A stretch of 64,000 bases of DNA from Ostrea edulis (Eukaryota): NCBI RefSeq assembly GCF_947568905.1, contig NC_079164.1, positions 25,606,001 through 25,670,000 on the forward strand, read 5' to 3'. Below are positions 3,763 to 57,265 of the stretch, in pieces; within the stretch, counting starts at the first letter, position 1, and each line of letters starts with the position of its first letter. The notes under the pieces were generated by a model that worked only from the letters and a program-made list of their open reading frames with translations, ran no database searches and had not been told where the DNA came from. The position numbers and the translations under genes are program-made.

Positions 3763-5767
3763 ATGATGTGTCTAAGCAACAAATGGTATTTCTTTTATTC
3801 AGTTTTGTCTTTAATGCTCGAAAGTTTGATATTCAGTTAAGTATAATTTTAAAATGTCTTTAACAGGCCATACGACTGCTTGCCGAATTATAAGATAGGA
3901 GTCGAGAAATGTGAAAGTAAGTACCGAGAAATGTCACACGAAGAATTTTGAGAAAATTTAACATTAATAAATTCAACCAGTATTTTCATGAAAGACAAAC
4001 TCTAATGATTTCTATAGGAAACAATATTGTTAATGGTTCGTGCAACGAACAGGCCACGGGACTTTATCATATGATCCAATTCAGATCCTTTGATCCGCTC
4101 ATATCGCTACTCGATCTACATAATGTACGTGAGCGGATCAAACGATCTGATCTTAATCAGATTATCATATAATCCTTATGTTTTGTACAACAATGAAAAA
4201 AGTTTTAGATTCACGGTAATTATTTGAACAAATATCAGCTCTCTTCAGATGGAATGATATCATTAGCTTACATCAATTTTGTGCTGTGTAGTTTGTGATG
4301 CGGGTGAATACGGCTGTAATTGTTCCACGCCCTGTGGGGCCAACAGCTACGGTGTTAACTGCTATGAAACATGTCACTGTACACAGGACCAGATATGTGA
4401 TCCTCAGAATGGATGTCTAGTAGTCAATATCTCTACGAAAACGCCAGGTAAATTAAAATATTTTGTGTCGCGATGTTTTCCTTTTTCAGCAATTGTTCAA
4501 TAAACCTTGAAACACCAAGGACATGGATCTTTTTACTCCAGAAGAACTTTCAGTATCAGAATGGTATTTTACAGATAGCTGTACATAGACTAATTTTTGA
4601 AAATACCATCATTTGTGGAGGTGAGCACATGGGATACAATTCAATTCAATTTTCATATCATGAATCATAGATGCGAAGAGGACGAAGACTCGTATGGTTT
4701 GAAACTCTTCCGTATCTATGATACACTTCACATAATATGTACCTTTTCTATGATACCATTCTTGATTTCAATCGATATTACTTATATTTGCACAATCCAA
4801 GAGCAGTCAGTCTTTTTATAAACTACATGTATCACTCTGACCTTCAGAAACCCAGTCTGCAGAATATGACATGATGACGTCAGATCAGTTCAACGTTTTC
4901 TTCAGCAACATCACCACGTCTCTTCTGGTTTCCCTGGCATTTGTCGTGATTGTCAGCGTCATCTGCGGTTTCATTCTCATCAAGTAAATGAAGGAAACCA
5001 GAGCATTGAAAATGTTAACCTATAAACGATTAATAGATACTGCTAATTTTACATACCTACTTACTGTCTAAATATTACTGATATTAATTTCTAGTCGTAC
5101 ATTTGTATTATTTATAAAAACGGCTGTTTATTTCAGGTCAAGTAAAAGATATTACAAACGTGAATATCGTAAGTAATTTCTTCTTCTTCAAAAGATGAAT
5201 ATCTATATCATGATTCTAATTGCAAGTAAATTGAGGTTTCTCAGTTCAATGTTAACTGATGCAATGATTTCAATTTTGAAAAAAAAAAATTCAGAACGAA
5301 TGCTGAGTAACTTAATGGAGGGAAGGCCAGGGGCTGGAAATGAGTATCATGGTTACAGCTCTGCAGACTCATTGACCAACTTCAGACTCTTTCCTTCAGG
5401 CGGCGAAGAAAATACGTACGATCATACCGATAGAGGCGACTACCACATTCTGTCTCTCAGACATACGTCACAGAGGGCGTGTGTTTACGACGGACAATGT
5501 CCTCTGATGACGTCATTTCACGTCCAGACTCCACAAACAACTGCTGAAATATCACCATCGCCTGATATCGAATATCTAGGTATTAACATTGAACCAGAAT
5601 GTTTAATAAATCTCTTTAGAGAATCGGAAGATGACTTATTTAGCACTGTCAGTAATCAGGAAATCATATCCGAGATCCAGAGTGACAGTGAAAAGGGGAA
5701 TTATGAAAATTACAGCGGATGTGACGTGAACAGTGGGATCCTGAACACAGGAAGCGTGCTGTCTTAA
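3763..5767 (+). CDS. Gene A: single-pass EGF-like (MEGF10/SCARF-like) receptor, ectodomain class I + tail class X; 5' end unresolved
   Basis: Exons 3763-3785 (MMCLSNKW, uncertain), 3867-3916 (PYDCLPNYKIGVEKCE), 4292-4447 (CDAGEYGCNCSTPCGANSYGVNCYETCHCTQDQICDPQNGC), 4848-4983 (TM SLLVSLAFVVIVSVICGFILI), 5137-5168 (SSKRYYKREY), 5295-5767 (Tyr-rich tail, stop TAA). All introns GT-AG; phases 2,1,1,2,1 match paralogs; 870 nt = 289 aa plus stop. Confidence 0.8.
4081..4150. repeat. 21-bp inverted repeat hairpin related to the 483-582 palindrome
   Basis: TCAGATCCTTTGATCCGCTCA (4081-4101) versus TGAGCGGATCAAACGATCTGA (4130-4150), 1 mismatch. Shares ATCCGCTC and TTAATCAGATT with 483-582. Confidence 0.7.
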
Positions 5768-13239: not shown

Positions 13240-16200
13240 ATGTATACATGTAATTTAATCATATGTGTCATTTTGACCGCGAATCCGGTATACAATATAC
13301 ATAATTCTACAGTAGGATGTTACATAAACGACACGTAAGTAACCATGATAATTATGACAACTGGAAATTATTCCTCTGTCAATTTCTAATGTATACTGTA
13401 CATATTTTATACTATATGCTGTATGTTGTATTGTACTTCTTTACTTTCATAAGATTGTAGGTGATACTGCGTTTTACATCACAATGTACATCTGTTATAT
13501 CTTACAGTTGTGTCCGGAAGGGGGGGGGGTACAATTGTAAGAAAGACGAAGATAACGAACAGTGATAAATCTAATAACTTCTATAAGCAATACAAAACAG
13601 AGAGTTAAGCGAAAAATAAGGAGAGAGAATTCAAGGAGCAAATCACGGTTTCCTCAAACTTTTGTTTGTCGTTTTGTGAAATACAGATGTACATGTATAC
13701 GGAACATTTTATTGGTTTTCATGGAATTTTGAATCATTGATTCAATTAAATCCATTATTGGCAATGAGATTAAAAGTATCTCTAGTACTTTTATTTTCGA
13801 CTTTATCAAAGCATGCCAGATTGGCGAATATTAAATACTAAGTGAATTACAAATTGCGCTTTTAGACTTAGATGTTATTCATGATATTTCTTTACAAAGA
13901 GAGAGGGACATAGAAATGACGAGAAAACCCCCAAATCGTAATATGTTTACTGTGAACACGGAAATATTCGCCCCCGTTTTAATTTCGTCCCTTTTGCCCT
14001 CGTTGTCAATAGGCGAATTTGAGAGTGGGAGAAACTGTTTTCTCTCACATCTCTCTTTTAAATCAACTATGTCTGGATGAATTTAAAACGGGACGAAACT
14101 GCCTGCGAGTGTAGAAAGGCGAAAATAACACGGGACGAAAATAACACTGTATACAGTATTTCAAACATATTTTATTATGTATAATTCCAATGTGATTTGT
14201 TACAATTGTTTTGATTGGACAAAAATAAAGCTGAACAATAGTTTACACATGAATAAATCTGAAAACGTGATGTATTCATACATGTCTGAAAACAAATATC
14301 GTACATGTAGTACGGGGAAACTATTCAAATTTTTGCAATTGTCAATAAAGCGAATGAATTGGAATTATAAGAATCAAACATTCTTTTTGAAGAATTTATC
14401 GATGTGTAACCTCGTTTTGTTTTACTCACACTTCGCACTTTTATTCAGTTTGTGAGTAAAATGTCCGGAGTTTACACATCGATAAATTCTTCATAAATGT
14501 TTACATAGACTTCTCCAGTACTAGATCATTACTTTATCAAATTATAAATGAAATTAGTTGCAAGTCTAGCAGAGATATTTTGCGAGGTCCGTCCACGACA
14601 AAAAACAAGGTCGTCATATTTTCCCATACAAAGTCTATAACCTTTTTATTATCAAAATGGCCAAATGAGCTCTAAAACTTCATTGTTATTTCGGATTTCA
14701 AACATTTCGGTTGAGCATCACTGAAGAGACATTATTTGTCGAAATGCGCATCTGGTGCATCAAAATTGGTACCGTACAAGTTTTACATTATATACTTTTT
14801 ATATATTTTTAACAATTTCTTTATTGGTTTAACTGAGTGAAAGATGAAAAACACGAAAAATTTGAAAATTAACGGCGTCGTAACGGCTTGTGTATTGATT
14901 GTGACGTAATGTTTGCCGGCCGAAATGTTTCTGGGCATATATCTTGGGATATATGCCCGGAAACTTTTAAAGGAAAAAGAAGAGATGAAATTGAAAGTAT
15001 ATAATAAAAAGATATATAAATATCAATAGTAAGTAGAACAAATGTAATGATAAAAAGATTAGTTATAATCACATCGTTTATATACACTACCTTTATATCT
15101 TAAGACAAATTTAGTTATTTTCATTCCAGGTTTATCCCATGTGAAACAAATTTGAAATTAATGAAATCAGGGAAATGTGAAGGTAAATATACTCTCTGTT
15201 ATACTTGAAACAGAAGTGGCTGTAGTTATTTCATGATTAACTTGAATATACATGATCAAATTTAGAATAAAATGCTCAGGGTGAGAATATAACCTTTGAG
15301 ATTCTGGGAGGAATTAATCACCCCTACATTGCCAGAAATATACATTCTTGATGTACACATTACGATGTGTAGATCGTTCTATTCAACAAGTTCCCAGGGT
15401 AATCCCCACCCCCTCATTCTATGATTGTTCAAATATCTTCAAAACAGATGAAATCATTACCCTTATGGCCTATTAGGATGGATAAGTCAAAATGCATTGA
15501 GTATTCTGCTGGGCAAGTGCCCTTGGGGTAATCCCAAACCCTATTTCATAATTGTTGATATACATCTAAAGCAATTGAGATCCTGACCCCTAAACCAAAT
15601 GCATGTATATTCCTGCTGCACATATGAAGATGCATTGAGTATTCTGATGGGTGGGCAAGTGCCTTAATCCCTGGACCCATCATGTTTTTATTGTTCAAAT
15701 ATCTTTAAAATGGTTGAGTATCCAACCCTTAAAGCAAATATATTCTTGTTGCACATGACACAATGCGCTGAGCACCATATTTTCGTTCGCCTCCACCCCT
15801 TTCGCTCCTCAAGGTAAAAATAAAAATTCCAAAACCCCACATCTAAAGGACACCGCCAACCATCTCCCAAAAGTTGATTTAGCCAATTCATAAAATGTAA
15901 GAGTAGTTCTTAAAACCAGGTTTTTATGTAGAAAAATGTCGTTTTTGAACCCCAATTGGCCCACGAGTGAAAATGAAAATGCACATCTATAGGACACCAC
16001 CAATTACCTTCCAAAAGATGATTTGGCATAAAATGTATGAGGAGTTCTGGGAACCAAGTTGGGTTTTACTTTTTAAAAAAGCATCATTTTTTACCCTATT
16101 TGCCCCAAGGTAAAATTCAAAATTCTGAAACCTTATTGCACATCTACAGGACACCACCTATCACATTGCAAAAGATTATTTGATTACTGCTTAAAATAAA

Positions 16201-19200
16201 AGAGGGGTTTAAGGAAGAAGAAAGTGTGACAAACGGACGGACTAGGGTAACAACAATATACCTAAACTTTCTTTAGAAATTGCGGGTATTATGAAAATAA
16301 AATTCTCCATCAGAAAACATACCAGATTTCCTTTGTCGAAAGATTTTATTTTAGATCTGATAAACGGTAGCAGTTTTAAAGAAAAATATAGATATATTCT
16401 GTTTGTAGATTGCGAGGCTGGTAGATATGGTTGTAACTGCTCTCTAGTATGTTCCAGCAATGCATTTGGTGTAGGCTGTTACTCCACATGTAACTGTTTT
16501 GCTGATGAGATTTGTGATCCCGCAACAGGATGTACTAGCAACACCAGTGTTTCTTCATATACAACAGGTAGATTTCTCTATAAACATTTATATAACAGTT
16601 ATGAAACAGGTACTATTTTCTAATTGTTGAACAACAGGTAGAATTCCCTATGAGTAATACAACATATTTCCCATTAACTTATACAACAGTTAGATTGATA
16701 TATGAACATATTATCCTATCAGGTACAATTAGTATGTTAATTTTTTTTTCTCTTTAAATACGCATGATTTGAAATAAACGTTTGTTTTGCGACATGTTTT
16801 TGGTGATCAAAACAACTAATTATTGTATTTCCCTACATATTTTGTGAATTATTGAAAAACATTTCGTAGTCCATAGATTAGAAATAGTTCAGCTTTTTTT
16901 CTATAAGAATTTATCTAAATAACGATTTTGTTGTGTTTTGCCGATTTCGTGGTTACATGCGCATTATAAAATCTAATATTTTGATGGAATAAGTTGCAGT
17001 ATATATCCATATATTTCCATATCTATTGCATCTCTCTTCCCATGAGATATGTTTTCAGATTCCTCCAACCTTCCAAGAAGTTCTCCTGTAAGGTCATTTA
17101 ATTTTCCAAAAAACAATCGTCTGAACAAATTTCCGTTGTCGCTGCTGGTGTCCTCGGCAACTGTAGTTTTCTTCAGCATACTCTGTGCTGCTATCCTGAT
17201 ACGGTATTACACAATACTCAAATCTATTTCATTTGAAATTGTTATTTCTACACATGCCTCAAATTTTATTTCTTTTTAAAACATTTTCAGATTAAAAAAA
17301 AGAGTATACCAACGTGAATACAGTAAGTAAATTTGATTTAGAGTCCTATTTCAAAATCCACACAATTTGTGTAGTATTAATTTAGGATTTAATATAGTTT
17401 CAAATCATCTTATTCATGAGGGTCAGAATTCTAGAAAAAATACCATCATACTACAAAAGGTAGAAAATGTGGGAAATCTTGAAAGTCCACATGGAAATAA
17501 TGTGAATGTGATGGAACTCTACGTAAACTAAACATAGTCATGGACATCGTCATGCTCACGGCGGGTGTGACCGGTTGACAGGGAATGCTTACTCCTCCTA
17601 GGCACCTGATCCCACCTCTGGTGTGTCCAGGGGTCCGTGTTTGCCCAACTCTCTGTTTTGTATTGCTTATAGGAGTTATGAGATTGATCACTGTACGTTA
17701 TCTTCGCCTGTAATGCCACCGGATGATAATTCGAAACACACCGCCCGTCCCTTAAACTTAGTCTAATTAACAAAGGAATATATGCTATCAACATGAACAA
17801 CATCGTTGGTTATAATACAGTTCAGACTTGTATTCCAAGTTCCGGTCAACACCCTGTATTACCCACAAGTGTACCTCTACTATTGCATCCATTTGTAAAT
17901 TTACAAACACACTTTACGCTTAGATATAGATGATCTTATTCAAAATTATAGGGGAAAACAGAGTGCCAAAAAAAGTGGAGTCAAATTCGTCTAACGATAA
18001 TATACCATAGGATTTGCGAAATGCTGACTTTAAACGAAACTGTTGAAATCCCTGCATCATCAACTTGTTTTCAGTAGCCTGCCTCGATTTAAAAACTGAC
18101 CACACACCGAACAAGCTCTTGCGTATCAAATCAGTTGAGAGATATTAACACCATATGTAGGTGATAATGGAATATTGCTACATAAATATGGGAAGTTGAC
18201 GATGGAGAAGTTGAAATCGTCCTGTTTGTCATAAAGTTGAGTTGTTAGTTTACCGTTATATATATTTCCAATAAAATATTCAAGTATGAAGCAGAAGTGG
18301 ACGAGCTCACAGGGATATATCGAATCGACATATAAATGAAAATTATCATTGTTGATAGATAATACATCGTCGATATATATAAATGTCAAATTCAAGGCCA
18401 CAGCAAGAGATTTTTTTCTTCTCACGTAAAAGTGTTTCGATAAATTCTGCTTCATAGGTATATAAAAACAAGTCAGCTAACAAAGGAGCACAATTCGTGC
18501 CCTTGTTGATTCCAACAGACTGTTGGAAGACCTGAACACCAAAGACCACGATGATAATTATTGTCAATTAGGAACTCCAGCATATTTTGTATTTCAACTT
18601 CAGAGTGCTTGTGTGGGGAATCAGAATGGTGTTTAACAAAGGAATTTTTTGGATGGCTGAATACTAGATTCGAATATTTCCGTTTTCCATTATTTTAAAG
18701 AAGCAACTGCCTATGATGTCAAAAAGTCTAGTCTTTAATTCATCGTGAGGAATGGTAGTGTAAAGTGTTGAAAAGTCATACCTTTTGATTTTCTTGTTTT
18801 GGGAAAAGTTTTGCGATTTCAAATTCACTAAAAATTCTCCAGAAGTTTTTAGAATCCACATTTGATTTACACCACTTCTGGTATATGTAGTCGCACAATA
18901 CTTTTGAGGTTTCTCCTTCACAGCTGTTAATGTTTTCGTGAGGAGCAAAGATAGGGGCTTTGTAGAACATTTACTGGATTCAGCAATGTATCTTTATTTG
19001 TAAGGGTTTTTATGAAATTTAGGAATCTAGTATAGGTACGGTAACTCATATTCATCCGACCCATTGACTAGGATATTAAATGTGTCTAACATTGAAGCAT
19101 GGTTTTGAAGAATTCATCTTTTGAAAAGGCAAATATCATTTTAATTGTGATTTCCCGCTCTTGCGTGGGGTTTTATCTAGTACAAATAAAAAGGAATACT

Positions 19201-19352
19201 TGTAAAAAAAAACACCCCAACAACCCAAAAAGCAATAATCAAAATGCAAAAACAACCCCTGGAAATATATGACAAGAAAACCAATGTCAAAGTATATAAC
19301 ATAAATCGAATTAATGTGTAATACATGTACATCAAATCTATGAAATGTCATT

Positions 19353-19395
<43 letters not shown>

Positions 19396-20110
19396 CTGGT
19401 TACGAAAGGAACGCTCTACCACTGAGCTACTGTGACCGGTGTATACACTTAATGAAGTAAAGACACAGCTACATGAACATTGTAAATAATGTAACAATCA
19501 TAGACATACAGAAACGAAACCATGAATTCAAACTGATTTATCTCGATTAATACTATGTCCACCGTCAATGTTAATTTACTTTTGTTTCATACATGTACAA
19601 TAACACACAATATTTGAATTTATTACATATTGAATAAGTTGTCCTGTTTGAAATTCAATATGATCGTATCTTTTTTCTTCTTCAGAAAAACTGGTAAATA
19701 ACTTGCACATGGCTGAAACAAGAAGAACTGAAGATGATCCTGAATATGCTTCCTACAACTATACAGATTCGAGTATATTCAGCAATAGCCTACGCCATAG
19801 CAATGAAGAAAACACGTACGACCATTCGGAACGAGGAAGCTACAACATCTTATCTCTAAGAACCAGATCATCAATGGTAAATGAAAATGACGAGGGGTGT
19901 GATGTGGCTTCATGCAGTTTTCCACATTCATCTTACAGTATGTCAAAATCTAAAGTCGAGGAGTTGAATGTCGGGATAGAACCAGAATGTTTGATCAACC
20001 TATTTCACGAGGACGAAGGTCAAAAAGTAATATATACCAAATGGGAAAAGGAAACTAATCCTAAATCACCGACTACAAGTATCAACAGACCAAAGTCAAG
20101 CATATGGTGA
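13240..20110 (+). CDS. Gene B: single-pass EGF-like receptor, ectodomain class II + tail class X (302 aa, intact)
   Basis: Exons 13240-13334 (signal-like MYTCNLIICVILTANPVY..GCYINDT), 15130-15182 (FIPCETNLKLMKSGKCE), 16409-16567 (CEAGRYGCNCSLVCSSNAFGVGCYSTCNCFADEICDPATGC), 17059-17203 (TM LSLLVSSATVVFFSILCAAILI), 17291-17322 (LKKRVYQREY), 19686-20110 (tail, TGA). All GT-AG; 909 nt. Confidence 0.88.
13540..13608 (-). mobile_element. Penelope-like 3' tip fragment
   Basis: GAAGATAACGAACAGTGATAAATCTAATAACTTCTATAAGCAATACAAAACAGAGAGTT is the reverse complement of the family 3' end. Confidence 0.7.
13948..14158. mobile_element. Tc1/mariner-type MITE with TACTGT...ACAGTA ends
   Basis: Left TACTGTGAACACGGAAATATTCGCC; right CGAAAATAACACTGTATACAGTA; subterminal GAAAATAACAC repeats. 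Confidence 0.55.
14708..14774 (+). ncRNA. Type-I hammerhead-ribozyme-like motif (stem I not evident)
   Basis: CTGAAGA (14721-14727), stem II GACA/TGTC, GAAA (14741-14744), stem III TGCGC/GTGCA, TC (14760-14761). Confidence 0.4.
14927..14964. repeat. 17-bp hairpin inside an intronic repeat
   Basis: GTTTCTGGGCATATATC-TTGG-GATATATGCCCGGAAAC, one G-T pair. Confidence 0.7.
15385..16293. mobile_element. Helentron-associated non-autonomous element (HINE-like) with internal tandem subrepeats
   Basis: Internal repeats (GATGCATTGAGTATTCTG x2, CATCTAAAGGACACC/CATCTACAGGACACC), short ACGG run and terminal hairpin AATATACC...GGGTATT. Left end approximate. Confidence 0.55.
17551..17710 (+). mobile_element. 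Penelope-like 3' UTR fragment in gene B intron 5
   Basis: GCTCACGGCGGGTGTGACCGG...GATCACTGTACGTTATCTTCGCCT. Confidence 0.8.
17960..19130 (-). mobile_element. Penelope-like RT fragment in gene B intron 5
   Basis: ORF track: GTNCAPLLADLFLYTYEAEF, IYIDDVLSINN, NIPLSPTYGVNISQLI, KYCATTYTRSGVNQMWILK, YDFSTLYTTIPH. Confidence 0.85.
19393..19439 (-). mobile_element. Truncated tRNA-derived SINE head abutting (CT)n at 19354-19392
   Basis: Reverse complement CCGGTCACAGTAGCTCAGTGGTAGAGCGTTCCTTTCGTAACCAGG: A-box plus a TTCGTAA loop (CGT, Thr-like); no T arm. Confidence 0.55.
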
Positions 20111-20944: not shown

Positions 20945-23900
20945 ATGTTAGGTTTCGTCTTCATTACGATTCTCCTTAAACTTGTGCATCCTGCTGAAGG
21001 GGACTGTCACGTAAACAACTGGTAATTCAGTTATTCTACAAATTTTAAATATTGTTACAAAAGATTGCATGATATTTATCATAAAGTTTAAATGTTACAT
21101 AATCTAAATGTGTGAACTATTTTCTGTATTTTGAATTGACCTGAATAGCAGATTTTATCAATCTACTTAAAATGTACCTATATGATAATACCTGTTCACG
21201 TTATCTCAAATTAGATTTCCTTTTATGACTCTTGATATGGAGTAATATTCATGTGCATGTATTTTCCACCAAAAATGAACTTTAACACAGCCAATTATCA
21301 TACACAGGCCATTGTCATGTGAAGCCAACTTCAAAGTAGGGCCCGATAAATGTGAACGTAAGTAAAGTACTACCAAAATAATTGGCACAGAGAATTTATG
21401 TAACAAATCGTGTGAACACGGCTCTAAGAAATAGAAAACTACATTGAACTGACAACTCATTTCAGCATGTGAAGCCGGTAAATATGGATGTAACTGCTCC
21501 CAGGACTGCACCGTCAATACATATGGTTTGAACTGCTACCTCAAGTGTAATTGTTCTGTGGATGAACTTTGTGACCCAGCAGTTGGATGTGTTAGCTTCA
21601 ACATCACTTCAACGTACAAAACATTTACACAACAAACATCGGTTTCAGCATCATCATCATCATCATCATCATCAACAACACCATCTTCATCATCAGGTTT
21701 ATATTCTTCCTTATTACACGTCTACTGATTTATCTCCCTTTAAATTTAATACAATAAAACTGTCTATTTCCCAGAAAATGCAAAATCACCGCAACTCCAT
21801 ATCTAATATTCATTGATATTTTTAACCAATTAAAATACCCGCTAGGTGGAGCGTTCCGCACTGAGGTCTGTGACATATTGTTATTATTAGACGTCATGAA
21901 AGAAAAACTGTAATCATAATGGTCATTCGATCAAGCTCTTGCGTATCAAATCAGTTGAGAGATATAAACACCATATGCAGGTGATAATGGAATATTGCTA
22001 CATAAATATGGGAAGTTGACGATGGAGACGTTGAAATCATCCCGTTTGTCATAAAGTTGAGTTGTTAGTTTGCCGTTAATATCTACTTTCAATAACATAT
22101 CTAAGTATGAAACAGAAGTGGACGACTCTTTGGTGTCTTTTATTTCGAGTTCACTGGGATATATCGAATCGACTGAATGCAAATTATAATTGTTAATAGA
22201 TAATTCATCGTCGATATATCTAAATGTCAAATTGAAGGCCACAGCAAGAGATTTTTTCATCTCAAGTAGAAGTTTTTTTTAAAACATAAATTCTGCTTCA
22301 TAGGAATATAGAAACAGGTCAGGTAACAAAGGCGCTCTATCAAGAGTTAAAGAAAGCTCTTTTTTATTACAGATTATTTGAATTTAGATATAAGAAACTT
22401 TGTTGATATTAAAAAATGGACTTTTTATACAAATTGGGTTGACAAAGGCATTAAGACCTTGAATGGCTTAGTTTTACAGAATGGAACATTCAAATGTTTT
22501 ACTGATGTAAAAGATGTGGTTGGTACAAAGAACCTTTTAAGCTATTATTGTCTTATTTCAAAAGTACCCAAAAATATTAAAAAAACAAATTACTGATTTT
22601 AAAAACAAAGTACATCATGAATTTTTGAGTCCAAATCAATGCATTGTACAGAAATGAACTCTAGTTCTAATGTTAAATTGTTATATCAAGTTTTGAAGGA
22701 AAAGGAATTCATAGCCCCACAACTCAAAAGAGAGAAGGGGGAAACTTATCTCAGTGAAACTATTTCAGGAAAATGTTAGGAAGTTTACTGTATGAACGCA
22801 TCATTATGCACAAAAGAAACAAAATTAATTGATTTTCAATACCGTAGTATGTGTTATATAGCTACAAACTCTTTCCTTCACAAACTTAAACTTGTAGACA
22901 ATGACTTGTGTTCATTTTGCAAAAGCGAAAGAGAAACAGTCACTAATATTTTTTATGACTGTGCGTATGTATCTGCTTTCTGGAGAGATTTTGTGAAATG
23001 GTACAATGCACTTGAAAAAGATTATAAAATCAAAAAAGAATTGTGTTACTAGGCAATATTGATGGAAGCTGTTTGGAAAATTTTCTTCTTTTGTTAGTAA
23101 TAGAGCACATTTATTACTCCAGATCACAGGGCTCAAAACCCAAATTGTCAGATGCAATTGATTTGTTTAAATACTATAGAAATTTATAAAAATATTGTCA
23201 AAATGTATTTCATAGCAAGTCCAAAATGCTTGGTAAATGGGCATTGTATGATAATATAATGGACAAATAGTTTGTTAAAAATCAATATACATTGATATGA
23301 AAAATAAAACAATTACCTTTATATTTAAATTTCCATGTGTATATATGTATTTTTATGTGTGTATTTATATTTATGTGTGTATATGTATATATTATACATG
23401 TATATATTATATATACAATTCATTGTAATTGTTGATTTAAAGGTGCACGGAGTAATTGCAAATGTGAATGAGCGAGTGAAGATTAAAGTTTGTATGTATA
23501 AATGTTTTGAAAATACAAAAATAAAACATTAAAAAAACTAAGGAGCACAGTTCGTGCCCAGGGGATTTCCAACAGACTGTTGGAAGACCTGATCACCAAA
23601 GACCACGAAGATTTTGTCAATGAGGAACTCCAGCATATTTTTTATTTCAACTTCAGAGTACTTGTGTATGGAATCAGAGTGGCGTTTAACAAAATATTTT
23701 TTGGAATGACTGATCACTAGATAGGAATATTTGCGTTTTCCATTTTTGTTGATAAAGCAACTATCTATGATGTCAAAAAGTTTAGTCTTTAATTTATCGC
23801 GAGGAATGGTCGTGTAAAGAGTTGAAAAGTCGTACGTTTTGATGTTGATTTGAGAAAAGTTTTGTGATTTCAAGTTTACTAAAAGTTCTTTGGAAGTTTT

Positions 23901-26763
23901 TTTTAGAATCCACATTTGATTTACACCACATCGGGCATATGTAGTTGCACAGTACGTTTGAGTAGAATAAATATTGATAACATGAACCCATTTCAATCCG
24001 TAGTAGATTAAGTTAATCTTACTGAAAATCGTAGTCTGAACGCAATGCAGATTAAATATTGTGTGTTAAGTTTACTCATGTTATGCCAATCCCAGTTTGA
24101 ACCGCCCTAAGTAACACGATACGCATAATGCCCAGTGATTTTCTTGATTGAAAAGAAATGTCAATTTAAACCAGACACAGTTGATCAGTCCCCATACAAT
24201 TGTAGATGGATGGTCGTATAATCACTCATTACATCGAGTCATATGAAATGCAAAACATTTTGTATATGGCATTATTAAATATTTCAATCCGACTCCTGTG
24301 TAACGACCATGGGTGATTGTTTCTTTATGATAATTCAGACAATATCGTACATGTACCACATATCATCCGTCTACTGATTTGTTTATTTATCTAGAAGCTC
24401 AAGAGACGACAACAGTGCTGAGAAATAGTGCAGCGCCATTAAAACCATTAACGATGTTCAACGCTGTTATTATTGCATTAGCAGCCTCATTGGTTTTAGT
24501 GGTTACGCTGAGCATTTCCTGCATAGTTATTGTATTAAGGTAATTATAATTATCTATCATAATATCAGTTGTTGTGTCACAATATACCTGTTTATTGTAG
24601 TTAAACTTTTATCTCTCTTTTTATGCCCCCCCCCCTACTTGAAGATGCAGGGGCACATATTTTTGGTTTGTCTGTCTGTGTGTCTGCAAAACTTTAACAC
24701 TAGTCCTAACTTTTGAATAGATGCTAATATAGCTTTTATATGTTACATGTGTAATGTATTCCTGGTGACATAACCTTCTTTGATTATCAAAGGATTTGAC
24801 CTCGTGATCGTTTGACTTGCTTTTGAGTAATTTAGACCAAAGCCATAACTTTTAAATGTTTAGTAATATGTCTTTTATATTCCACATGTACTTTCTTTTG
24901 AAAAGACATTTCTTTAAGTAGCATTTTTTAATACCTCATGACCTTGACCTTTTACCTACTTTTGAAATGTTAACCTTGGTAATAGCTTTTGAACGGGTTG
25001 GGCTAAGGCTTTGCTATTTCACATGTGTCTTCTTTGTAATAATAGTTTTCATTTCTGAGTTTGTAATATTGACCTTGGGGTTTGACATACTTTTGAAAAA
25101 CTTTAACCTTGGCCCTTATCGACTACGTCGCAATTCGGGTGCATCAGTGTTTTACAAGCACAGATTGTTTCATTGTGTGATTGTATGACTGAAATTTAGG
25201 TTTAACAAAAGCCTTCAGAAATTTAAGATAATTATCGATTCATATGGAGGACAAGTTGTAAAAGTGACAAACATCAAATGTCAATGTATTTTTGAAAAGA
25301 CTCTAGGGATTTGAAATTTTGGGAAGGTCACCCAACAGGAAAATAAGATTTAGCAACGCATAGATACATTGTACATGTATTTATTTTCACTATATTTTTT
25401 AGTGCTGTAATAACAACGCATAAATATATGTATTTATTTTTACTGTATTTGTTTGTAGACGAAACTCGAAAAAGGGGACAAAAACAGCTACGAGTAAGTG
25501 CCCTAATGTTTTTATTATCGTTGAAATAACAGCGTGCCACTTCGCTTGATGGAGCGTGCAAATTTCAATCACTGATTGGTCATGTAGTTTCAGTAAAGTT
25601 AGCTTGGATGACCACGTTATGCCATTCTTTCAAAGAAGCCGCACCTAAACATTTGCAGGGTGATCAAACTGTCATGCTGTTACTGAAATGATTGCATTAT
25701 TGATATAAAACTCACTGCAGTCATTGTTACCATAAACTAATGGACAGTAAGATAAAACAAAATCTAGTATGGAATACGTAATGTCAATTGCCGCGAAATC
25801 AAAGAAGCAGTCTCGCAAATTCAGCTCTAAAAATTTTGAAACTTTCCAAACCCATTGATGACGAATATCATCAATAACATTAAAAGTCACCAACCTTTAT
25901 CTCTTTATGACGTCACAATCCTATTCTGTTGTATTATGACTAAATCATCTGCGGCTCTATTCTCTGTGTTTGGGATAGTGTGAATATGCTATATCATTCG
26001 CCAACTTCCGATTCAAATTTGCTGATAAGATAAAGAGCATATTATCAATTATGTAATAATCAACAAAACATTTTTAAATCTGTGACTGAGTAGATATCAT
26101 ATAGATTGTTGAAAATTCGCAATATGTACCTATTCATAACAAAGTCTTGCAATTCCGCCCCGTTTCTAAAAAAGACTCTAATATTTCTACAAATATGTAG
26201 ATGTGAGAATTTATGAAATTGCAAATTGATGGAATTGAAGTTATGCCATTCGCAAAATAAATCTTTAAAATGGATAAAGTTTTTGATTTTAAAAATAGAA
26301 CTTTGTAATACGGATTAATACTGTATATTTGTAAAATTATCATAACGATAGCTATATATCATGAATAAAGAGTGTCATCAATTCTAACTATCGTTTAGAA
26401 ACAAAGAACAGCGAGGAGATGTCTGAGACCGCGGAACAAAATCCAGATTTCCATTCGTACCTTACCATCAGCGAAAGATCATTTCGTCTGTATGCCGATG
26501 TTCATTATGACGAAGCGGAGGAGAGGAAGAGCTTAACATCAGTATCACTACACAGCAAAGGATACGATACCAGCATCAGTGATAAAAGTGGAGGATCCGG
26601 TTATTATCTAACACCGACAGTAAAGACTGCCAAAAAAGACACAAACGGTAGTCAGTCATCTGTAACACCGACAGTAAAGACTGCCCAAAAAGATGCAACC
26701 GGTAGTCAGTCATCTGGCGATTATGACGATACCATCACAAATTGTTCAGAAACCTGTATCTGA
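20945..26763 (+). CDS. Gene C: single-pass EGF-like receptor, ectodomain class I + Ser-rich stalk + tail class Y (300 aa, intact)
   Basis: Exons 20945-21021 (signal MLGFVFITILLKLVHPAEG-DCHVNNW), 21308-21357 (PLSCEANFKVGPDKCE), 21466-21696 (CEAGKYGCNCSQDCTVNTYGLNCYLKCNCSVDELCDPAVGC plus poly-Ser), 24395-24539 (TM AVIIALAASLVLVVTLSISCIVIVL), 25459-25493 (RNSKKGTKTAT), 26399-26763 (tail, TGA). All GT-AG; 903 nt. Confidence 0.88.
21925..22335 (-). mobile_element. Penelope-like RT fragment in gene C intron 3
   Basis: ORF 21946-22260: AVAFNLTFRYIDDELSINN..YDKRDDFNVSIVNFPYLCSNIPLSPAYGVYISQLI. Confidence 0.85.
22340..23537 (+). mobile_element. L1/Tx1-like LINE 3' fragment (zf-RVT-type C-terminus, 3' UTR, A-rich tail)
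   Basis: KLIDFQYRSMCYIATNSFLHKLKLVDNDLCSFCKSERETVTNIFYDCAYVSAFW (C-x2-C-x7-N-x4-C); AATAAAACATTAAAAAAA at ~23520-23537. Confidence 0.75.
23538..23985 (-). mobile_element. Penelope-like RT fragment
   Basis: YCATTYARCGVNQMWILK..YDFSTLYTTIPRDKLK..GNPLGTNCAP. Confidence 0.85.
24619..25170 (+). mobile_element. HINE-like (Helentron non-autonomous) element in gene C intron 4
   Basis: TTTTATGCCCCC...GGGGCACATAT hairpin, (GTCT)n, ~130-150-bp subrepeats (GACCTT..ACTTTTGAAA), end GCATCAGTGTTTTACAAGCACAGATTGTTT. Confidence 0.7.
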
Positions 26764-36524: not shown

Positions 36525-37019
36525 ATGTATACATGTAATTTAATCGTATGTGTTATTTTGACCGCGATTCCGGTATATAATTCTACAGCAGGATGTAACA
36601 TAAACGGGTAAGTAACCATGCTAATTATGACAGCTGGAGATTCTTCTTCTATCAACTTCAAATGTATACTGCACATATTTAATTGTATAAATTCATACTG
36701 TGCTGTATGTTGCATTGCCTTTATTTACTTTCATAAGTTTGTAGGTGAGTTTGAGTTTTACATTACAATGTACATTTGTCATATGTTACATATATGCTTG
36801 GAGGTGTGGCAGTTCATACAATTGTAACGGATAGAAAATAAGAACCGAGAATTTAAGGAGTAATTTACGTCTTCTGCAAGTCTTTCAAGTGCCGATTTTC
36901 TGTCGTTTTGTAATATACAGATGTGCCAGGAATATTTTGTTAATTTTCAAGGAATTCTAAATCGGTTAATTTTATCGACATTATCAACACCTGGCATATT
37001 AGCGAATTGAATTGAATGG

Positions 37020-37068
<49 letters not shown>

Positions 37069-40000
37069 CATAAAGACAACTAGAAAAACCACAAAAACTC
37101 AAAAGTTCCATGTTCATTTTGACCATACATGTATTTTATTGTGTAGAAGTAGGCAGAGCATACATAGACCTTCTCCTGAGGTAGAAGATGATAAAAATTT
37201 TAACATTATCAATCAAATTAGTTGCAAGTCTAGCAGAAATATCAAGAATAACTAAAAGTACATATAGCCTTAACTCGATATCTATAGCAAGCACAAGAAA
37301 ATATAAGTATCTATGACTCACGTGTAATGATAAAAAGGGTTAGATGTAACCGCGTTTACATAAATTGTATCTTTATACATTACGGCAAATGTAGCTATTT
37401 TCATTCCAGGTCTAACCCATGTGGAGAAAATTCCAGATTGTTGGAATCTGGAAAATGTGAAGGTAAATGCAATCCTAAATTTAAAAAAAATGAGTCCATC
37501 AGAGAAGCGTACTAGATTGCCGCGCTGTTAAAAGGTTTTATATCAAATCTAATAAGGTACCTCTTTTGAGGAAAGGTATAGATATATTTCTTCTTTCCAG
37601 CTTGCGAGGCTGGTAGATATGGTTGTAACTGCTCTCTACTCTGTCCCAACAATACATTTGGTGTAGGCTGTTACTCCACATGTAACTGTTCTGCTGATGA
37701 GATTTGTGATCCCGCAACAGGATGTACTAGCAACACCAGTGTTTCCTCATATACAACAGGTAAATTTCTCTATAAACATTTATATAACAGAGTTATGAAA
37801 CGGGTAATATTTTCTATTAGTTGAACAACAGATTGATTTCCCTATGAGCTATACAATAGATTTCCAGAGTTAGACAACATATTTCCCCATGTGCTATGTA
37901 ACAGGTAGATTTCCCATGCGTTATATAACGGGTAGCTTTCCCATGAGTGATATAACAGATAAATTTCCCATGAGTGATATAACAGGCAGATTTCCCATGA
38001 GTGATATAACGGGTAGATTTCCCATACGTTATATAACGGGTAGCTTTCCGATGCGTTATATAACAGGTAGATTTCCAATGCGTGATATAACGAGTAGATT
38101 TCCCATGCGTTATGTAACAGGTATATTTTCCATGCGTTATATAACGGGTATATTTCCCAAGCGTTATACAACGGGAAGATTTCCCATACGTTTTATAACG
38201 GGTACATTTCCCACATGTTATATAACAGGTAGATTTCTCATGTGTTATATAACGGGTAGATTTCTCTTGCGTTATATAACGGGTAGATTTCCCATGAGTT
38301 ATAAAACGGGTAGCTTTTCGATGCGTTATATAACAGGTAGATTTCCCATGCGTGATATATCGGGTAGATTTCCCATGCGTTATGTAACAGGTAGATTTTC
38401 CATGCGTTATATAACGTGTATATTTCCCAAGCGTTATACAACGGGTAGATTTCCCATGCGCTCTATAACGGGTAGATTTCCTACGCGTTATATAACAGGT
38501 AGATTTCTCATGTGTTATATAACGGGTAGATTTCTCTTGCGTTATATAACGGGTAGATTTTCCTTGTGTGTTATACAACATATATCCCCATGACTTATAC
38601 AACAGGCATATTTCCCTATGAGCACATTATCCTATCAGTTACAATTAGAATGGCGATTATATTTTCTCTAAATATACATTACTTGAAGTAAAACGCTCAT
38701 TGAGCGACCTGATTTGGAGACCAAAACCACTAGATACCGATATTTTCTTTCTCAAAAGTATTCTATGAATTATTAAAATCGATTTTGTAAGTTAATAGAT
38801 GATATAATAATTTTGTTACGTTTTACCGATTTCGTGGCAACATACACATTATGAAAGGTGGGGATAACGAACAGTATTCAATTCCATAACTCCTATAAGC
38901 AATACAAAAAATAGCGAGTTAAGGAAACACGGACTCTTGGACACACCACAGGCGGGATCAGGTGTCTAGGAGGAGTAAACATCCCCTGTCGACCGGTCAC
39001 ACCCACCATGAGCCCTATCTTTTGCTCAGGTAAACGGAGTGATCCGTAGTCAAAATCAGTGTGACAAGAACAGCCTAACAATCGGTATGAAATAAGTGAG
39101 ACAGCATTTGACCGAATGAAAGCTTGTATTGGCCAACTGCATCGTTATAGCGACCATAGAATTTGCGAAAAGCTGACTTTAAACGAGACTGTTGAAACCC
39201 CTGCACCATCAATTTGTTTGTCAGTAGCTTTCCTCGATTTTAGTTTGCCGTTAATAACTATCCAAGTATGAAGCAGATGTGGAAGACTCATGGTGTTTTT
39301 CATCTCGAGTTAACAGAGATATATCGAATCGACATTCGAATGAAAATGGTTGTTTTGTCCTCATCTAGAAATTTTTGAATTAAAGCTGACATGTATTAAT
39401 AAATATATACTACTCAAAATATGATAAGGATCATAGATATTTTTCTGTTAAAAAAATTAATAACTGCATAACTGGCAATATTGTGTCCAAGTGAAATAAA
39501 AAACGTCTTCAACAAACTCGCACGTACATTTCATGGCATGGGAAATGCGTTGCTCATCACAGTTTCTGCTTTTGCTACCATTGCATGATTTTCACTCAGG
39601 CATCGGTGTCTGATTCTTTCTAAAATTTCAAACTCACTTGAGTGTTTACACTACGTTTATCAACACAATGCCCCCTCAACGTGTAAGGCGTCGCCTGACG
39701 ACAGAACAACTGGGCAGATGTATTGGAATGCTTGACGCTGGCTATTCACAACGTGACGTTGCAAATGCACTAAACGTCAGTCAGAGTGTTGTAAATATGG
39801 CCTGGAACCGACAGCAAACTTTTGGCACAGCAACACACCGACATGGGGGTGGTCGTCAGAGGTCGACAACCCAACGCCAAGACCATTTGGTGGCTTTTCA
39901 GGCACGACGCCATCCCTTTGGGACAGGAACCAGCTTACGTAACGACCCCCTGAACGCCTCGGGGGTGAATTTCTCCACTCAGACGATGCGGAATCAGCTC

Positions 40001-44080: not shown

Positions 44081-47000
44081 GTTAAGTCAATGAATATGGG
44101 CATACATAGACCGTAATTAAGTATATGGTCACCAAAGAGACAATGAAATTATATTTTCGTTTATACATTTCCTTTTATGTGTCTTTGTGTAATCAATTGT
44201 TTATTATTGATTGCAAATGCAATACCCGCATTTTCACACAGGTGTATATTTCTATCATTATTCCCTTATTTGTATATCCAAGTTTGTATATGATCATCAA
44301 TAAATTTTGAATTGTGCACGCAATATATCCAACCAGATGCTAGGTGTATATCATTAGATTCCCGATTTCTATAAACTGCAAAACCTCGACCAGACAAGCA
44401 TTCAATACAGGAAAACAAATATCGACTCTGACATCTCCCCTGATTGAAAACACCCTGTTTGGCCCTGGTGAAGTGTGTCGCAGTCTGTACAATGGAACGA
44501 CAACGTGTTGTAAAGTTCTAACGAGATACAAATAGGGTTTATCATTTTGTTTCGTGGATTCATCATAATAAAGAGAATCTAATATTTTCGGTAGGTGCAC
44601 ATCTCCGATACCTGTTGAGTAGACATCCGTATTTGATAAGTTTTACAGAATGGAACATTCTAATGTTTTACTGATGTAAAAGATGTGGTTGGTACAAAGA
44701 ACTTTTTAAGCTATTATTGTCTTATTTCAAAAGTACCCAAAAAGATTAAAAGACAAATTGCTGATTTTAAAAACAAAGTACATCATGAATTTTTGAGTCC
44801 AAATCAATGCATTGTACAGAAATGAACTCTAGTTCTAATGTTAAATTGTTATATCAAGTTTTGAAGGAAAAGGAGTTCATAGCCCCACAACTCAAAAGAG
44901 AGAAGTGGGAAACTTATCTCAGTGAAACTATTTCAGGAAAATGTTATACTTAATTTTACTGTATGAACGCATCATTAAGCACAAAGAAACAAAATTAATT
45001 GGTTTTCAATACCGTAGTATGTGTTATATAGCTACAAACTCTTTCCTTCACAAACTTAAAACTTGTAGACAATGACTTGTGTTCATTTTGCAAAAGCGAA
45101 AGAGAAACAGTCACTAATATTTTTTATGACTGTGCGTATGTATCTGCTTTCTGGAGAGATTTTGTGAAATGTTACAATGCACTTGAAAAAGATTATAAAA
45201 TCACAAAAAGAATTGTGTTGCTAGGCAATATTGATGGAAGCTGGTTGGAAAAATTTCTTCTTTTGTTAGCAATAGAGCACATCTATTACTCCAGATCACA
45301 GGGCTCAAAACCCAAATTGTCAGATGCAATTGATTTGTTTAAATACTATAGAAATTTATAAAACTATTGTCAAAATGTATTTCATAGCAAATCCAAAATG
45401 CTTGGTAAATGGGCATTGTATGATAATATAATGGACAAATAGTTTGTTGAAAATCACTATACATTTATATGAAAAATAAAACAATTACCTTTATCTTTAA
45501 ATTTCCATGTTTATGTGTGTATTTATATTTATGTGTGTGTATGTATATGTTATACATGTATATATTATATATACAATTCATTGTAATTGTTGATTTAGAA
45601 GGTGCACGGAGTAATTGCAAATGTGAATGAGCGAGTGAAGATTACAGTTTGTATGTATAAATGTTTTGAAAACACAAAAATAAAACATTAAAAAAACAAA
45701 GGAGCACAGTTCGTGCCCAGGGGATTTCCAAGAGACTGTAAGAAGACCTGATCACCAAAGACCACGAAGATTTTGTCAATGAGGAACTCCAGCATATTTT
45801 TTATTTCAACTTCAGAGTACTTGTGTATGGAATCAGAGCGGCGTTTACCAAAATATTTTTTGGGATGACTGATCACTAAATAGGAATATTTGCGTTTTCC
45901 ATTTTTGTTGATAAAGCAACTATCTATGATGTCAAAAAGTCTAGTCTTTAATTTATCGCGAGGAATGGTCGTGTAAAGAGTTGAAAAGTCGTACGTTTTG
46001 ATGTTGATTTGAGAAAGGTTTTGTGATTTCAAGTTTACTAAAAGTTCTTTGGAAGTTTTATTAGAATCCACATTTGATTTACACCACATCGGGCATATGT
46101 AGTTGCACAGTACGTTTGAGTAGAATAAATATTGATAACATGAACCCATTTCAATCCGTAGTAGTTTAAGTTAATCTTACTGAAAATCGTAGTCTGAACG
46201 CAATGCAGATTAGATATTGTGTGTGAAGTTTACTAATGTTATGCCAATCCCAGTTTGAACCACCCTAAGTAACACGATACGCGTAATCTCCAGTGATTTT
46301 CTTGATTGAAAAGAAATGTCAATTTAAACCAGACACAGTTGATCAGTCCCCATACAATTGTAGATGGATGGTCGTATAATCACTCATTACATCGAGTCAT
46401 ATGAAATGCAAAACATTTTGTATATGGCATTTTTAAATATTTCAATCCGACTCCTGTGTAACGACCATGGGTGTTTGTTTCTTTATGATAATTCAGACAA
46501 TATCATACATGTACCACATATCATCCGTCTACTGATTTGTTTATTTATCTAGAAGCTCAAGAGACGACAACAGTGCTGAGAAATAGTGCAGCGCCATTAG
46601 CGCCATTAAAGCCATTGAGGATGTTCAACATTGTTATTATTGCCTTAGCAGCCTCATTGGTAATAGTGGTTACGCTGAGCATTTCCTGCATAGTTATTGT
46701 ATTAAGGTAATGATAATTATCTATCATAATATCAGTTGTTGTGTCACAATATCCCTGTCTATTGTAGCTAAACTTTTAATTCTCTTTTTATGTCCCCCAC
46801 CTACTTGAAGATTCAGGGGCACATATTTTTGGTTTGTCTGTCTGTGTGTCTGCAAAACTTTAACACTAGTCCTAACTTTTGAATAGATGCTAATATAGCT
46901 TTTATATGTTACATGTGTAATGTATTCCTGGTGACATAACCTTCTTTGATTATCAAAAGATTTGACCTCGTGATCGTTTGACTTGTTTTTGAGTAATATA

Positions 47001-48945: not shown

Positions 48946-49064
48946 GCATGACGATTAAATACAGATTGCTATCATAGAAACATAAGGCATGTTTGATGTA
49001 ATTAAAGCATGAGATGTTTCTTTTAACTTTTGCCGTTAATTCCCAGCTCTTTCCCTGCCTACAT

Positions 49065-55999: not shown

Positions 56000-56523
56000 A
56001 TGTATACATGTAATTTAATCGTATGTGTTATTTTGACCGCGATTCCGGTATATAATTCTACAGCAGGATGTAACATAAACGGGTAAGTAACCATGCTATT
56101 TATGACAGCTGGAGATTATTCTTCTATCAACTTCAAATGTATACTGCACATATTTAATTGTATCAATTCATACTGTGCTGTATGTTGCATGGCCTTTATT
56201 TACTTTCATAAGTTTGTAGGTGAGTTTGAGTTTTACATTACAATGTACATTTGTCATATGTTACATATATGCTTGGGAGGTGTGGCAGTTCATACAATTG
56301 TAACGGATAGAAAATAAGAAGCGAGAATTTAAGGAGTAATTTACGTCTTCTGCAAGTCTTTCAAGTGCCGATTTTCTGTGGTTTTGTAATATACAGATGT
56401 GCCAGGAATATTTTGTTGGTTTTCAAGGAATTCTAAATCGGTTAATTTTATCGACATTATCAACACCTGGCATATTAGCGAATTGAATTGAATGGTAAAT
56501 GAAATTCAATTTGCGCTTACGGC

Positions 56524-56579
<56 letters not shown>

Positions 56580-57265
56580 AAGACAACTAGAAAAACCACA
56601 AAAACTCAAAAGTTCCATGTTCATTTTGACCATACATGTATTTTATTGTGTAGAAGTAGGCAGAGCATACATAGACCTTCTCCTGAGGTAGACGATGATA
56701 AAATTTTAACATTATCAATCAAATCAGTTGCAAGTCTAGCAGAAATATCAAGAATAGCTAAAAGTACATATAACGTTAACTCGATATCTATAACAAGCAC
56801 AAGAAAATATAAGTATCTATGACTTACATGTAATGATAAAAAGGGTTAGATATAACCGCGTTTACATAAATTGTATCTTTATACATTACGGCAAATGTAG
56901 CTATTTTCATTCCAGGTCTAACCCATGTGGAGAAAATTCCAGATTGTTGGAATCTGGAAAATGTGAAGGTAAATGCAATCCTAAATTTTAAAAACATGAC
57001 TCCATCAGAGAAGCGTACTAGATTGCCGCGCAGTTAAAAGGTTTTATATCAAATCTAATAAGGTACCTCTTTTGAGGAAAGGTATAGATATATTTCTTCT
57101 TTCCAGCTTGCGAGGCTGGTAGATATGGTTGTAACTGCTCTCTACTCTGTGCTAACAATACATTTGGTGTAGGCTGTTACTCCACATGTAACTGTTCTGC
57201 TGATGAGATTTGTGATCCCGCAACAGGATGCACTAGCAACACCAATGTTTCCTCATATACTACAG
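56000..57265 (+). CDS. Gene E exons 1-3 (class II ectodomain); TM and tail exons presumably beyond the window
   Basis: Exons 56000-56082 and 56916-56968 are identical to gene D; 57107-57265 has 5 nt differences from D. GT-AG sites intact. Confidence 0.82.

Follow-up and report, generated by a model that had tools for sequence, protein, structure and literature searches.

Does a tandem array of small receptor genes in the oyster Ostrea edulis encode paired receptors, i.e. one recognition module coupled to two cytoplasmic tails with different outputs, and is one of these tails built around an ITAM (immunoreceptor tyrosine-based activation motif)? The question is raised by positions 25,606,001 to 25,670,000 of contig NC_079164.1 (assembly GCF_947568905.1), placed at these same positions in OX387704.1, a stretch of 64,000 nucleotides of AT-rich animal DNA, hereafter called the window, in which all positions are counted from the first letter. 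The window carries four complete six-exon genes (A to D) and the start of a fifth (E), all on the plus strand and with GT-AG junctions and open frames. They belong to one of two types, i.e. those with tail X (genes A, B and E) and those with tail Y (genes C and D), and the two tails bear no resemblance to each other. ITAM-style signalling, its counterpart through ITIMs (immunoreceptor tyrosine-based inhibitory motifs) and paired receptors occupy a central place in the innate immunity of vertebrates, and their invertebrate counterparts are poorly mapped. An original prediction, made from the sequence alone, had proposed an ITAM-like tandem motif in tail Y and a consensus ITIM in tail X of gene A. 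The interval concerned, 26399-26763, corresponds exactly to gene C's final coding exon, preceded by an AG acceptor (26397-26398) and closed by a TGA stop codon (26761-26763).

Conservation of the tyrosines in tail Y

Gene C encodes a 300-aa type I membrane protein with a single epidermal growth factor (EGF)-like module of the Tie2/SREC/MEGF type, and its exon 6 (26399..26763, plus strand, phase 1) contributes all of tail Y except a juxtamembrane mini-exon. The predicted tandem motif YLTI-x7-YADV, with ITAM spacing and valine in the last position, is indeed present in both Y-tailed genes, i.e. in gene C as YLTI at 26458-26469 and YADV at 26491-26502, separated by the seven residues SERSFRL, and in gene D as YLTI at 48640-48651 and YADV at 48673-48684, always on the plus strand. 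In gene C, it lies in the conserved core NPDFHS-YLTI-SERSFRL-YADV-H-YDE (26440..26514, plus strand), which contains Tyr20 (26458), Tyr31 (26491) and Tyr36 (26506).

When 20 tails of the genera Ostrea, Saccostrea, Crassostrea and Magallana (species O. edulis, S. cucullata, S. echinata, C. virginica and M. gigas/angulata) are aligned, this core emerges as the best-conserved part of the tail, a block of 25 residues (N.D.HSYLTIS[DE][RK]S.R[LMI]Y..VHY[DE].) with a mean majority fraction of 0.80 and no insertions or deletions, compared with 0.45 and several of them elsewhere in the tail. I23 is invariant, and N14, D16, S19, Y20, L21, T22, S24, S27, R29, Y31, V34 and Y36 are each found in at least 90 % of the 20 sequences. 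Counted among the sequences with a residue at the respective column, Tyr20 is kept in 19/19, Tyr31 in 19/20 and Tyr36 in 19/20 tails. Thus, the motif tyrosines are conserved in orthologues and paralogues of four oyster genera, precisely the point on which the original prediction could have failed, and the motif is real and very unlikely to be a product of chance. Further intact copies of tail Y in a 40-kb array of M. gigas also retain the core block.

Two more tyrosine sites of the tail are conserved, namely a pYxxP-type site, YLTP (26605..26616, plus strand), with Tyr69 in 18 of 19 sequences and a nearly invariant L70, and Tyr108 in the C-terminal context DY[DE]D (14/15), which in gene C reads DYDD and is followed by the C-terminus ETCI (26719..26760, plus strand). 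Tyr55 and Tyr68 are not conserved. C-type tails of Ostrea, Saccostrea and Magallana terminate in ETCI or ETCF, the T-x-I of the former resembling a PDZ ligand. Such class I PDZ-ligand-like endings are seen in both tail types, i.e. ETCI/ETCF in tail Y (26749-26760 in the window) and STKL, STRL or STSF in tail X of Magallana. The tails of genes C and D also share an 18-aa (54-nt) tandem duplication, TPTVKTA.KD..GSQSS (26611-26718 and 48793-48900), which is absent from the O. edulis protein P0003.

How far does this tail reach beyond the window? A word search with the tail Y exon returned 13 relatives, and a HMMER profile run against 1.84 billion representative proteins gave 23 matches only. All matches with a named source are oyster proteins from the species listed above, while the unnamed open reading frame (ORF) calls resemble oyster tails, several of them matching tail Y copies in the M. 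gigas locus. Pfam gave no significant hit for any of the exons or for full-length homologues, and literature searches with accession numbers and motif strings found nothing relevant. Tail Y therefore appears, as judged by these sequence searches, to be a cytoplasmic cassette confined to true oysters (Ostreidae). The Magallana Y-type orthologue of 282 aa is encoded without a break on 17 short contigs; these stem from at least six sequencing runs and represent spliced mRNA.

Tail X and the sharing of ectodomains

Relatives of tail X were found with a profile built from genes A and B and the tail X portion taken from a read-through gene model of Saccostrea, as a first word search had returned only ORF calls from unspliced genomic contigs of O. 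edulis, i.e. the locus itself. They come from S. cucullata, O. edulis and Magallana, and some are named 'protein draper' or 'MEGF10' by NCBI. Across 12 aligned tails, the YD of YD[HQR] (Y41, D42), the Y.ILSL of Y[NH]ILSL (Y49, I51, L52, S53 and L54) and the EP.C..NLF.E of EPECL[IL]NLF.E are invariant. Tail X is an unrelated cassette that is likewise conserved across oysters. In gene A, YHILSL is found at 5441-5458 and EPECLINLF at 5591-5617; in gene B, YNILSL is at 19841-19858 and EPECLINLF at 19979-20005 (all plus strand). A block shared by genes A and B had been given as EENTYDH-x4-Y-x-IL; EENTYDH is there (5405-5425 in A, 19805-19825 in B), and the spacer has five residues (TDRGD and SERGS, respectively) rather than four.

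The proposed ITIM of gene A fared less well. The string IEYLGI is present at 5567-5584 and fits the pattern [I/V/L/S]xYxx[I/V/L], but this pattern is found in 43 % of shuffled A tails and the tyrosine is kept in none of the 11 other tail X sequences, the column holding E in gene B and E, S, R or D elsewhere. It is missing even from the A-type tail of S. cucullata (P0065). Since the tyrosine is thus restricted to gene A of O. edulis and matches are so frequent among shuffles, IEYLGI is best read as a chance match, which removes a false lead. The tails of genes B and E lack an ITIM; VIYTKW, the near-match noted in gene B, is present at 20027-20044 (plus strand). EPECL[IL]NLF, at 5591-5617 and 19979-20005, fits the acidic dileucine pattern [DE]xxxL[LI], and Y[NH]IL fits the YxxPhi pattern of sorting signals. 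From this motif matching alone, tail X may be an endocytic or sorting tail, not an ITIM tail.

Nearly the same ectodomain is found on both tails. Gene D (tail Y) and gene E (tail X) are identical at 96 of their first 98 residues, comprising the signal peptide and the ectodomain, while their transmembrane (TM) segments and tails are unrelated. They form the cleanest X/Y pair of the locus, B and D being a looser one. In S. echinata, an X-tailed gene and the Y-tailed gene next to it agree at 74 of 77 residues of the mature ectodomain, and two genes of the M. gigas array, one with tail Y and one with tail X, at 40 of 41 residues of the EGF core. We give pairwise identities here, the EGF cores (41-52 aa) being too short for a supported tree. 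By comparison, the X-tailed M. gigas protein P0066 and the Y-tailed M. angulata protein P0037 are merely 57 % identical. O. edulis and S. echinata also arrange their genes alike, in the order X (A-like), X (B-like), Y. X/Y pairing with near-identical ectodomains (96-98 %) is therefore real and recurs in three genera. It had been suggested that the class II ectodomain is wired to opposite outputs in genes B and D. One ectodomain class on two tails is what we find, but 'opposite' has no basis in the sequence, since the tails of B and E have no ITIM.

Tail Y, in turn, is joined to at least four N-terminal contexts. Apart from EGF-like ectodomains with a C-type TM segment, it follows an EGF-like ectodomain with X-type TM and juxtamembrane segments in C. 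virginica XP_078338859.1 (P0016), a C-type-lectin-like ectodomain below the significance threshold in two O. edulis genes on another chromosome (P0018 and P0050), and short non-EGF ectodomains (P0019 and P0031). In the C. virginica protein, the X-type juxtamembrane sequence SKQFYKRQY precedes tail Y, and the breakpoint of the swap differs from that in O. edulis gene D. In the two lectin-like genes, LOC125657772 and LOC130050249 (P0018, P0050-P0052), TM segment, mini-exon and tail Y stand behind an ectodomain of about 430 aa (C-type lectin, E = 0.001-0.004). Such varied contexts are the distribution expected of a modular signalling cassette, and they point to repeated shuffling of the tail exons.

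One such event can be followed in the window. Self-comparison reveals a tandem duplication of about 20-22 kb, in which 22470-27406 matches 44639-49600 at 95 % and 28105-44644 matches a stretch up to 63825. This duplication fused E-type ectodomain exons to the C-type TM, mini-exon and tail Y exons, giving rise to the in-frame gene D, and gene E is the parental copy of its ectodomain. Between the tail exons of C and D, eight synonymous and seven non-synonymous codon differences have accumulated since, just one of the changes affecting the core block, at a variable site. About 190 kb downstream, the array goes on with a second Y-tailed product of 282 aa, an X-tailed gene encoding 299 aa and a Y-tailed gene resembling C.

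In S. echinata, the 542-aa model XP_061196789.1 (P0020; L018:10001-19555) fuses an X-tailed gene with the Y-tailed gene beside it by read-through, and the second half of the model has no TM exon. The arrays also include pseudogenes. The M. gigas locus (L019; OY970747.1:34925722-34965995) holds about nine family members in 40 kb, among them frameshifted tail Y copies (15281-15399 and 35529-35650) and an EGF exon interrupted by an in-frame stop (31628-31789), and is a case of birth-and-death turnover.

Possible functions of tail Y

What, then, does tail Y do? From the gene models, the conservation of the motif, the swapping of tails and the identity of ectodomains, all of which are direct observations, we infer phosphorylation, its readers and the direction of signalling, and on balance we lean, by a modest degree, towards tail Y being a phosphotyrosine docking tail of a small type I receptor. 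Behind its signal peptide, this receptor has a short Cys-rich segment and one Tie2/SREC/MEGF-type module, then a stalk, a TM helix and about 130 aa of cytoplasmic tail, and the putative functional core of the tail is SYLTIS-x2-S-x-R-x-Y-x2-V-x-Y-[DE]-x, with three tyrosines and further ones at YLTP and DY[DE]D. Upon clustering of the receptor, a Src-type kinase would phosphorylate the tyrosines, which could then recruit SH2 proteins. Given the ITAM geometry (YxxI-x7-YxxV), the candidate readers include a Syk/Shark-type kinase with tandem SH2 domains, while the invariant valine, YDE[AVP] and YLTP make other SH2 readers at least as likely; the specific Syk/ITAM version takes a minority share of the confidence that we place in a docking tail. 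The third tyrosine stands in the context YDE[A/V/P] and the fourth in YLTP, which resemble Nck-type and Crk/Abl-type SH2 sites, respectively, and offer a lead only. Moreover, the invariance of residues that a generic motif leaves free (L21, T22, S24, S27, R29 and H35) argues for a specific reader rather than a generic one. With alternating X and Y genes in tandem arrays, a single recognition module could in this way be coupled to two different cytoplasmic outputs.

Phosphotyrosine docking is plausible in the oyster lineage, as ITAM-Syk signalling is experimentally supported there by the binding of CgIgR to Syk (PMC6994640), and as a paper on an oyster NCAM1-SHIP2 axis describes an ITIM-bearing receptor (PMC11841013). 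Tail Y agrees with an ITAM in its first half, YLTI, at the conservation given above (I23 in 20/20), and in its spacer, which has seven residues in every sequence, i.e. a Tyr-to-Tyr distance of 11.

Several observations weigh against a docking tail, and in particular against its ITAM version. The second half reads YxxV, with Val in 19 and Ala in 1 of 20 tails and never Leu or Ile, and thus departs from the canonical ITAM, the definition of which, as applied to other invertebrate receptors, demands L or I (PMC9546547). The lack of Leu and Ile at +3 is informative, since both would be single-step conservative changes, and on sequence grounds we would call tail Y ITAM-like but not a canonical ITAM. 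The tail of S. echinata XP_061196787.1 (P0022) carries three tandem SER..LYA[DN]V[HN]YE units after a single SYLAIS, with no YLTI partner for them, which suggests that the triplicated SER..LYA.V.YE unit can act alone and not as half of a bidentate ITAM. YLTI and YADV also fit a generic YxxPhi sorting signal. An AlphaFold model of a Magallana orthologue is of low confidence (mean pLDDT, i.e. predicted local distance difference test score, of 39.9), shows the tail without secondary structure and is too poor for use; a search of sequencing runs for O. edulis genes C and D listed none recorded as RNA. On the side of tail X, the endocytic reading comes from motif matching only.

The fit of YLTI and YADV to YxxPhi leads to a different explanation, in which the tyrosines would not be phosphorylation sites but sorting signals for the mu subunit of AP-2 or another adaptor, directing endocytosis or lysosomal delivery. 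An ectodomain of a type shared with the scavenger receptor SCARF1 would suit such a role, but the fit comes cheaply, at least one YxxPhi being present in 62 % of shuffled tails. We consider this unlikely, as YxxPhi tolerates any residue at x and several at Phi, yet L21, T22, I23, S24, S27, R29, V34 and H35 are nearly invariant and the spacing is fixed, and as three more conserved tyrosines (in YDE., YLTP and DY[DE]D) do not fit YxxPhi at all. The strict conservation of S19, S24 and S27, which equals that of the tyrosines, and of the nearly invariant R29 and H35 could instead mark a surface that works without phosphotyrosine, i.e. a Ser/Thr-phosphorylated site or the site of a lineage-specific partner, with the tyrosines as mere hydrophobic contacts; that the profile search found nothing resembling the block outside oysters would agree with this. 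On the other hand, a tail of about 130 aa with five conserved tyrosines, several of them in acidic contexts, and with no secondary structure in the low-confidence model is typical of tyrosine-kinase substrates, as is established for SH2 docking tails. The probability that we leave to such a surface is low, a little below that of the model of activating and inhibitory tails considered next.

According to that model, which is closest to the original prediction, tail Y is a true activating ITAM read by Syk or Shark and tail X an inhibitory ITIM read by SHP2 or Corkscrew, so that the two would form activating/inhibitory pairs like Draper-I and Draper-II. The x7 spacing is invariant in 20 tails, X/Y pairs with near-identical ectodomains do exist, the binding of oyster Syk to an ITAM receptor (PMC6994640) and the use of ITAMs with Shark/Syk by Draper and MEGF10 and of an ITIM with Corkscrew by Draper-II (PMC8092387) are precedents, and the conserved tail X tyrosine of Magallana reads V-S-Y-N-I-L and fits the ITIM pattern. 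However, the residue at -2 of YNIL varies (G, E, V, A or T), making this fit lineage-specific, the chance-level tyrosine of IEYLGI is found in O. edulis gene A only, and genes B and E have no ITIM. As, in addition, the second half of the putative ITAM is always YxxV or YxxA and the YA.V.Y unit is repeated alone in P0022, we regard the model as rather improbable, more so than a sorting signal. Short tyrosine motifs are of course common, matches to the loose ITAM pattern numbering about 70 when the window is translated in all six frames, so that a bare pattern match is weak evidence and it is conservation that carries the case. The pattern Y..[IL].{6,8}Y..[ILV] is nevertheless found in only 0.6 % of shuffled C tails, and no part of the tail is as well conserved as the block across four genera and many paralogues; a functionless chance match is hence close to refuted and has by far the smallest probability of all. 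Regardless of its reader, tail Y is a previously undescribed, oyster-specific cytoplasmic cassette with ITAM geometry, defined at the residue level, constrained in four genera and mobile between ectodomains.

Gene structures and comparison with known receptors

For the gene models, paralogues were compared by tblastx, annotated oyster proteins were aligned to the window by tblastn, and splice sites were inspected. Every gene opens with a leader exon and a short Cys-containing exon, continues with one EGF-like exon and a TM exon, and ends with a basic juxtamembrane mini-exon (32 or 35 nt) and a long tail exon, and the predicted products comprise 289 aa (A), 302 aa (B), 300 aa (C) and 282 aa (D), with only exons 1-3 of gene E in the window. 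We consider the models credible, since that of gene B equals a RefSeq entry, annotated product lengths fit those of A and C, and the interval of the original prediction coincides with the last coding exon of C.

Exons 1-5 of gene C (20945..25493, plus strand) were placed by tblastn with P0003, splice sites and reading frame, and encode the signal peptide (20945-21021), a short second exon (21308-21357), the EGF-like module with a Ser-rich stalk (21466-21696), the TM segment (24395-24539) and the mini-exon RNSKKGTKTAT (25459-25493). The NCBI product has 373 aa owing to an upstream in-frame ATG, the annotated start lying 73 codons before the signal peptide (region 20726-20944), at which homologues begin, and 373 minus 73 equals the modelled 300 aa. 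Positions 23335-23421 fall in intron 3, within a low-complexity run. In gene D (plus strand), exons 1-3 for the class II ectodomain (36525-36607, 37410-37462 and 37601-37759; span 36525..37759) are followed by the TM exon (46553-46706), the mini-exon (47632-47666) and the tail Y copy (48581-48945, core 48622-48696), and the 282-aa model is in frame (exons 4-6 spanning 46553..48945).

Of the X-tailed genes, gene A, with an A-type tail X, occupies 3763..5767 on the plus strand (exons 3763-3785, 3867-3916, 4292-4447, 4848-4983, 5137-5168 and 5295-5767). An alternative first exon at 3783-3835 was dropped, as it implied an intron of 31 nt, while 3763-3785 (MMCLSNKW) reproduces the annotated 289-aa product. 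This product lacks a signal peptide, and gene A may be 5'-truncated, or an upstream exon may be absent from the annotation. Gene B, with the class II ectodomain and tail X, extends over 13240..20110 on the plus strand (exons 13240-13334, 15130-15182, 16409-16567, 17059-17203, 17291-17322 and 19686-20110) and is identical over all 302 residues to RefSeq XP_056015928.1 (LOC130052985 isoform X2). Exons 1-3 of gene E (56000-56082, 56916-56968 and 57107-57265; span 56000..57265, plus strand) match isoform X2 of LOC125653181 (P0060) at 100 % in tblastn; the 3' part of P0060 is a tail X, and the TM and tail X exons fall past the end of the window.

The EGF exon is symmetric, with phase 1 at both ends and lengths that are multiples of three (231 nt at 21466-21696 in C, 159 nt at 37601-37759 in D). 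RefSeq isoforms without it exist in related genes, i.e. O. edulis LOC130054198 X2 (P0003) and S. cucullata LOC134228874 X3 (P0007), and such skipping yields receptors that keep the tail and lack the EGF module. Inside the duplicated unit, its large introns and intergenic stretches harbour long ORFs that resemble Tc1/mariner-type transposases, at 28135-29220 (362 aa), 39614-40720 (369 aa) and 58950-59749 (degraded, 225-266 aa). A repeated ORF family on the minus strand (…DDFNFSIVNFP…SPAYGVYISQLI…) is found at 8401-8721, 18129-18476, 21949-22278, 26986-27270 and 49187-49471; its fragments adjoin or lie inside receptor genes and are presumably transposon-derived.

Regarding the ectodomain, Pfam scans of exons and full-length homologues found neither an EMI nor an EGF domain match, while a profile of the EGF exon matches, among solved structures, the EGF-like repeats of Tie2 (E = 9e-6) and SCARF1 (E = 3e-5), and the module is therefore assigned to the SREC/MEGF subtype. 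SCARF1/SREC-I and Tie2 are its best matches of known structure, but these proteins have several repeats and unrelated cytoplasmic domains. The analogy with Draper and MEGF10 drawn in the original prediction holds only as far as this subtype is concerned. With Drosophila Draper, mouse MEGF10 and Caenorhabditis elegans CED-1, the oyster receptors share the EGF-like subtype, a single membrane pass and tyrosine-rich tails, but that family has an EMI domain and many EGF-like repeats, and its tails are not homologous to those of oysters. No NPxY was found in four tail sequences, the NPDFHSY of tail Y not fitting this motif. Having a single EGF-like module and no NPxY, the oyster proteins are not members of the Draper/MEGF10 family in the sense of PMC8092387. 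Furthermore, the alternative tails of Draper (ITAM in isoform I, ITIM in isoform II) are splice isoforms, whereas those of oysters come from separate adjoining genes.

Compared with canonical ITAMs (Yxx[L/I]-x6-9-Yxx[L/I]), such as those of FcR gamma, CD3, Ig-alpha/beta and CgIgR (DYTEL...YEKL), tail Y has in common a tandem pair of cytoplasmic tyrosines in a single-pass receptor and a YxxI first half. It differs by its YxxV, by a third invariant tyrosine five residues further on and by invariant flanks, which a generic ITAM does not need, and it has no sequence homology to any known ITAM-bearing chain. A peptide of about 25 residues covering the core would provide a concrete and cheap experimental entry to receptor signalling in mollusc haemocytes and to the 'paired' logic outside vertebrates.

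The arrangement as a whole is reminiscent of vertebrate paired receptors (KIR, LILR, SIRP, PILR and Siglec), i.e. adjoining genes in rapidly duplicating arrays with near-identical ectodomains and differing TM and cytoplasmic parts, which originate by duplication and exon shuffling and are interspersed with pseudogenes. It is tempting to speculate, although the balance is still against it, that true oysters keep a paired-receptor system of their own, in which one EGF-like module was repeatedly re-coupled, whether by duplication, exon shuffling or gene conversion in tandem arrays as the possible routes, to cassette Y for phosphotyrosine signalling with ITAM geometry or to cassette X for endocytic or regulatory functions. 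This would be an independently evolved invertebrate counterpart of the paired immune receptors of vertebrates. Neither of the oyster TM segments holds a charged residue for an adaptor, neither tail has a conserved ITIM, the motif of tail Y is ITAM-like only and stands in the receptor's own tail, and the ectodomains are EGF-like instead of immunoglobulin- or lectin-like.

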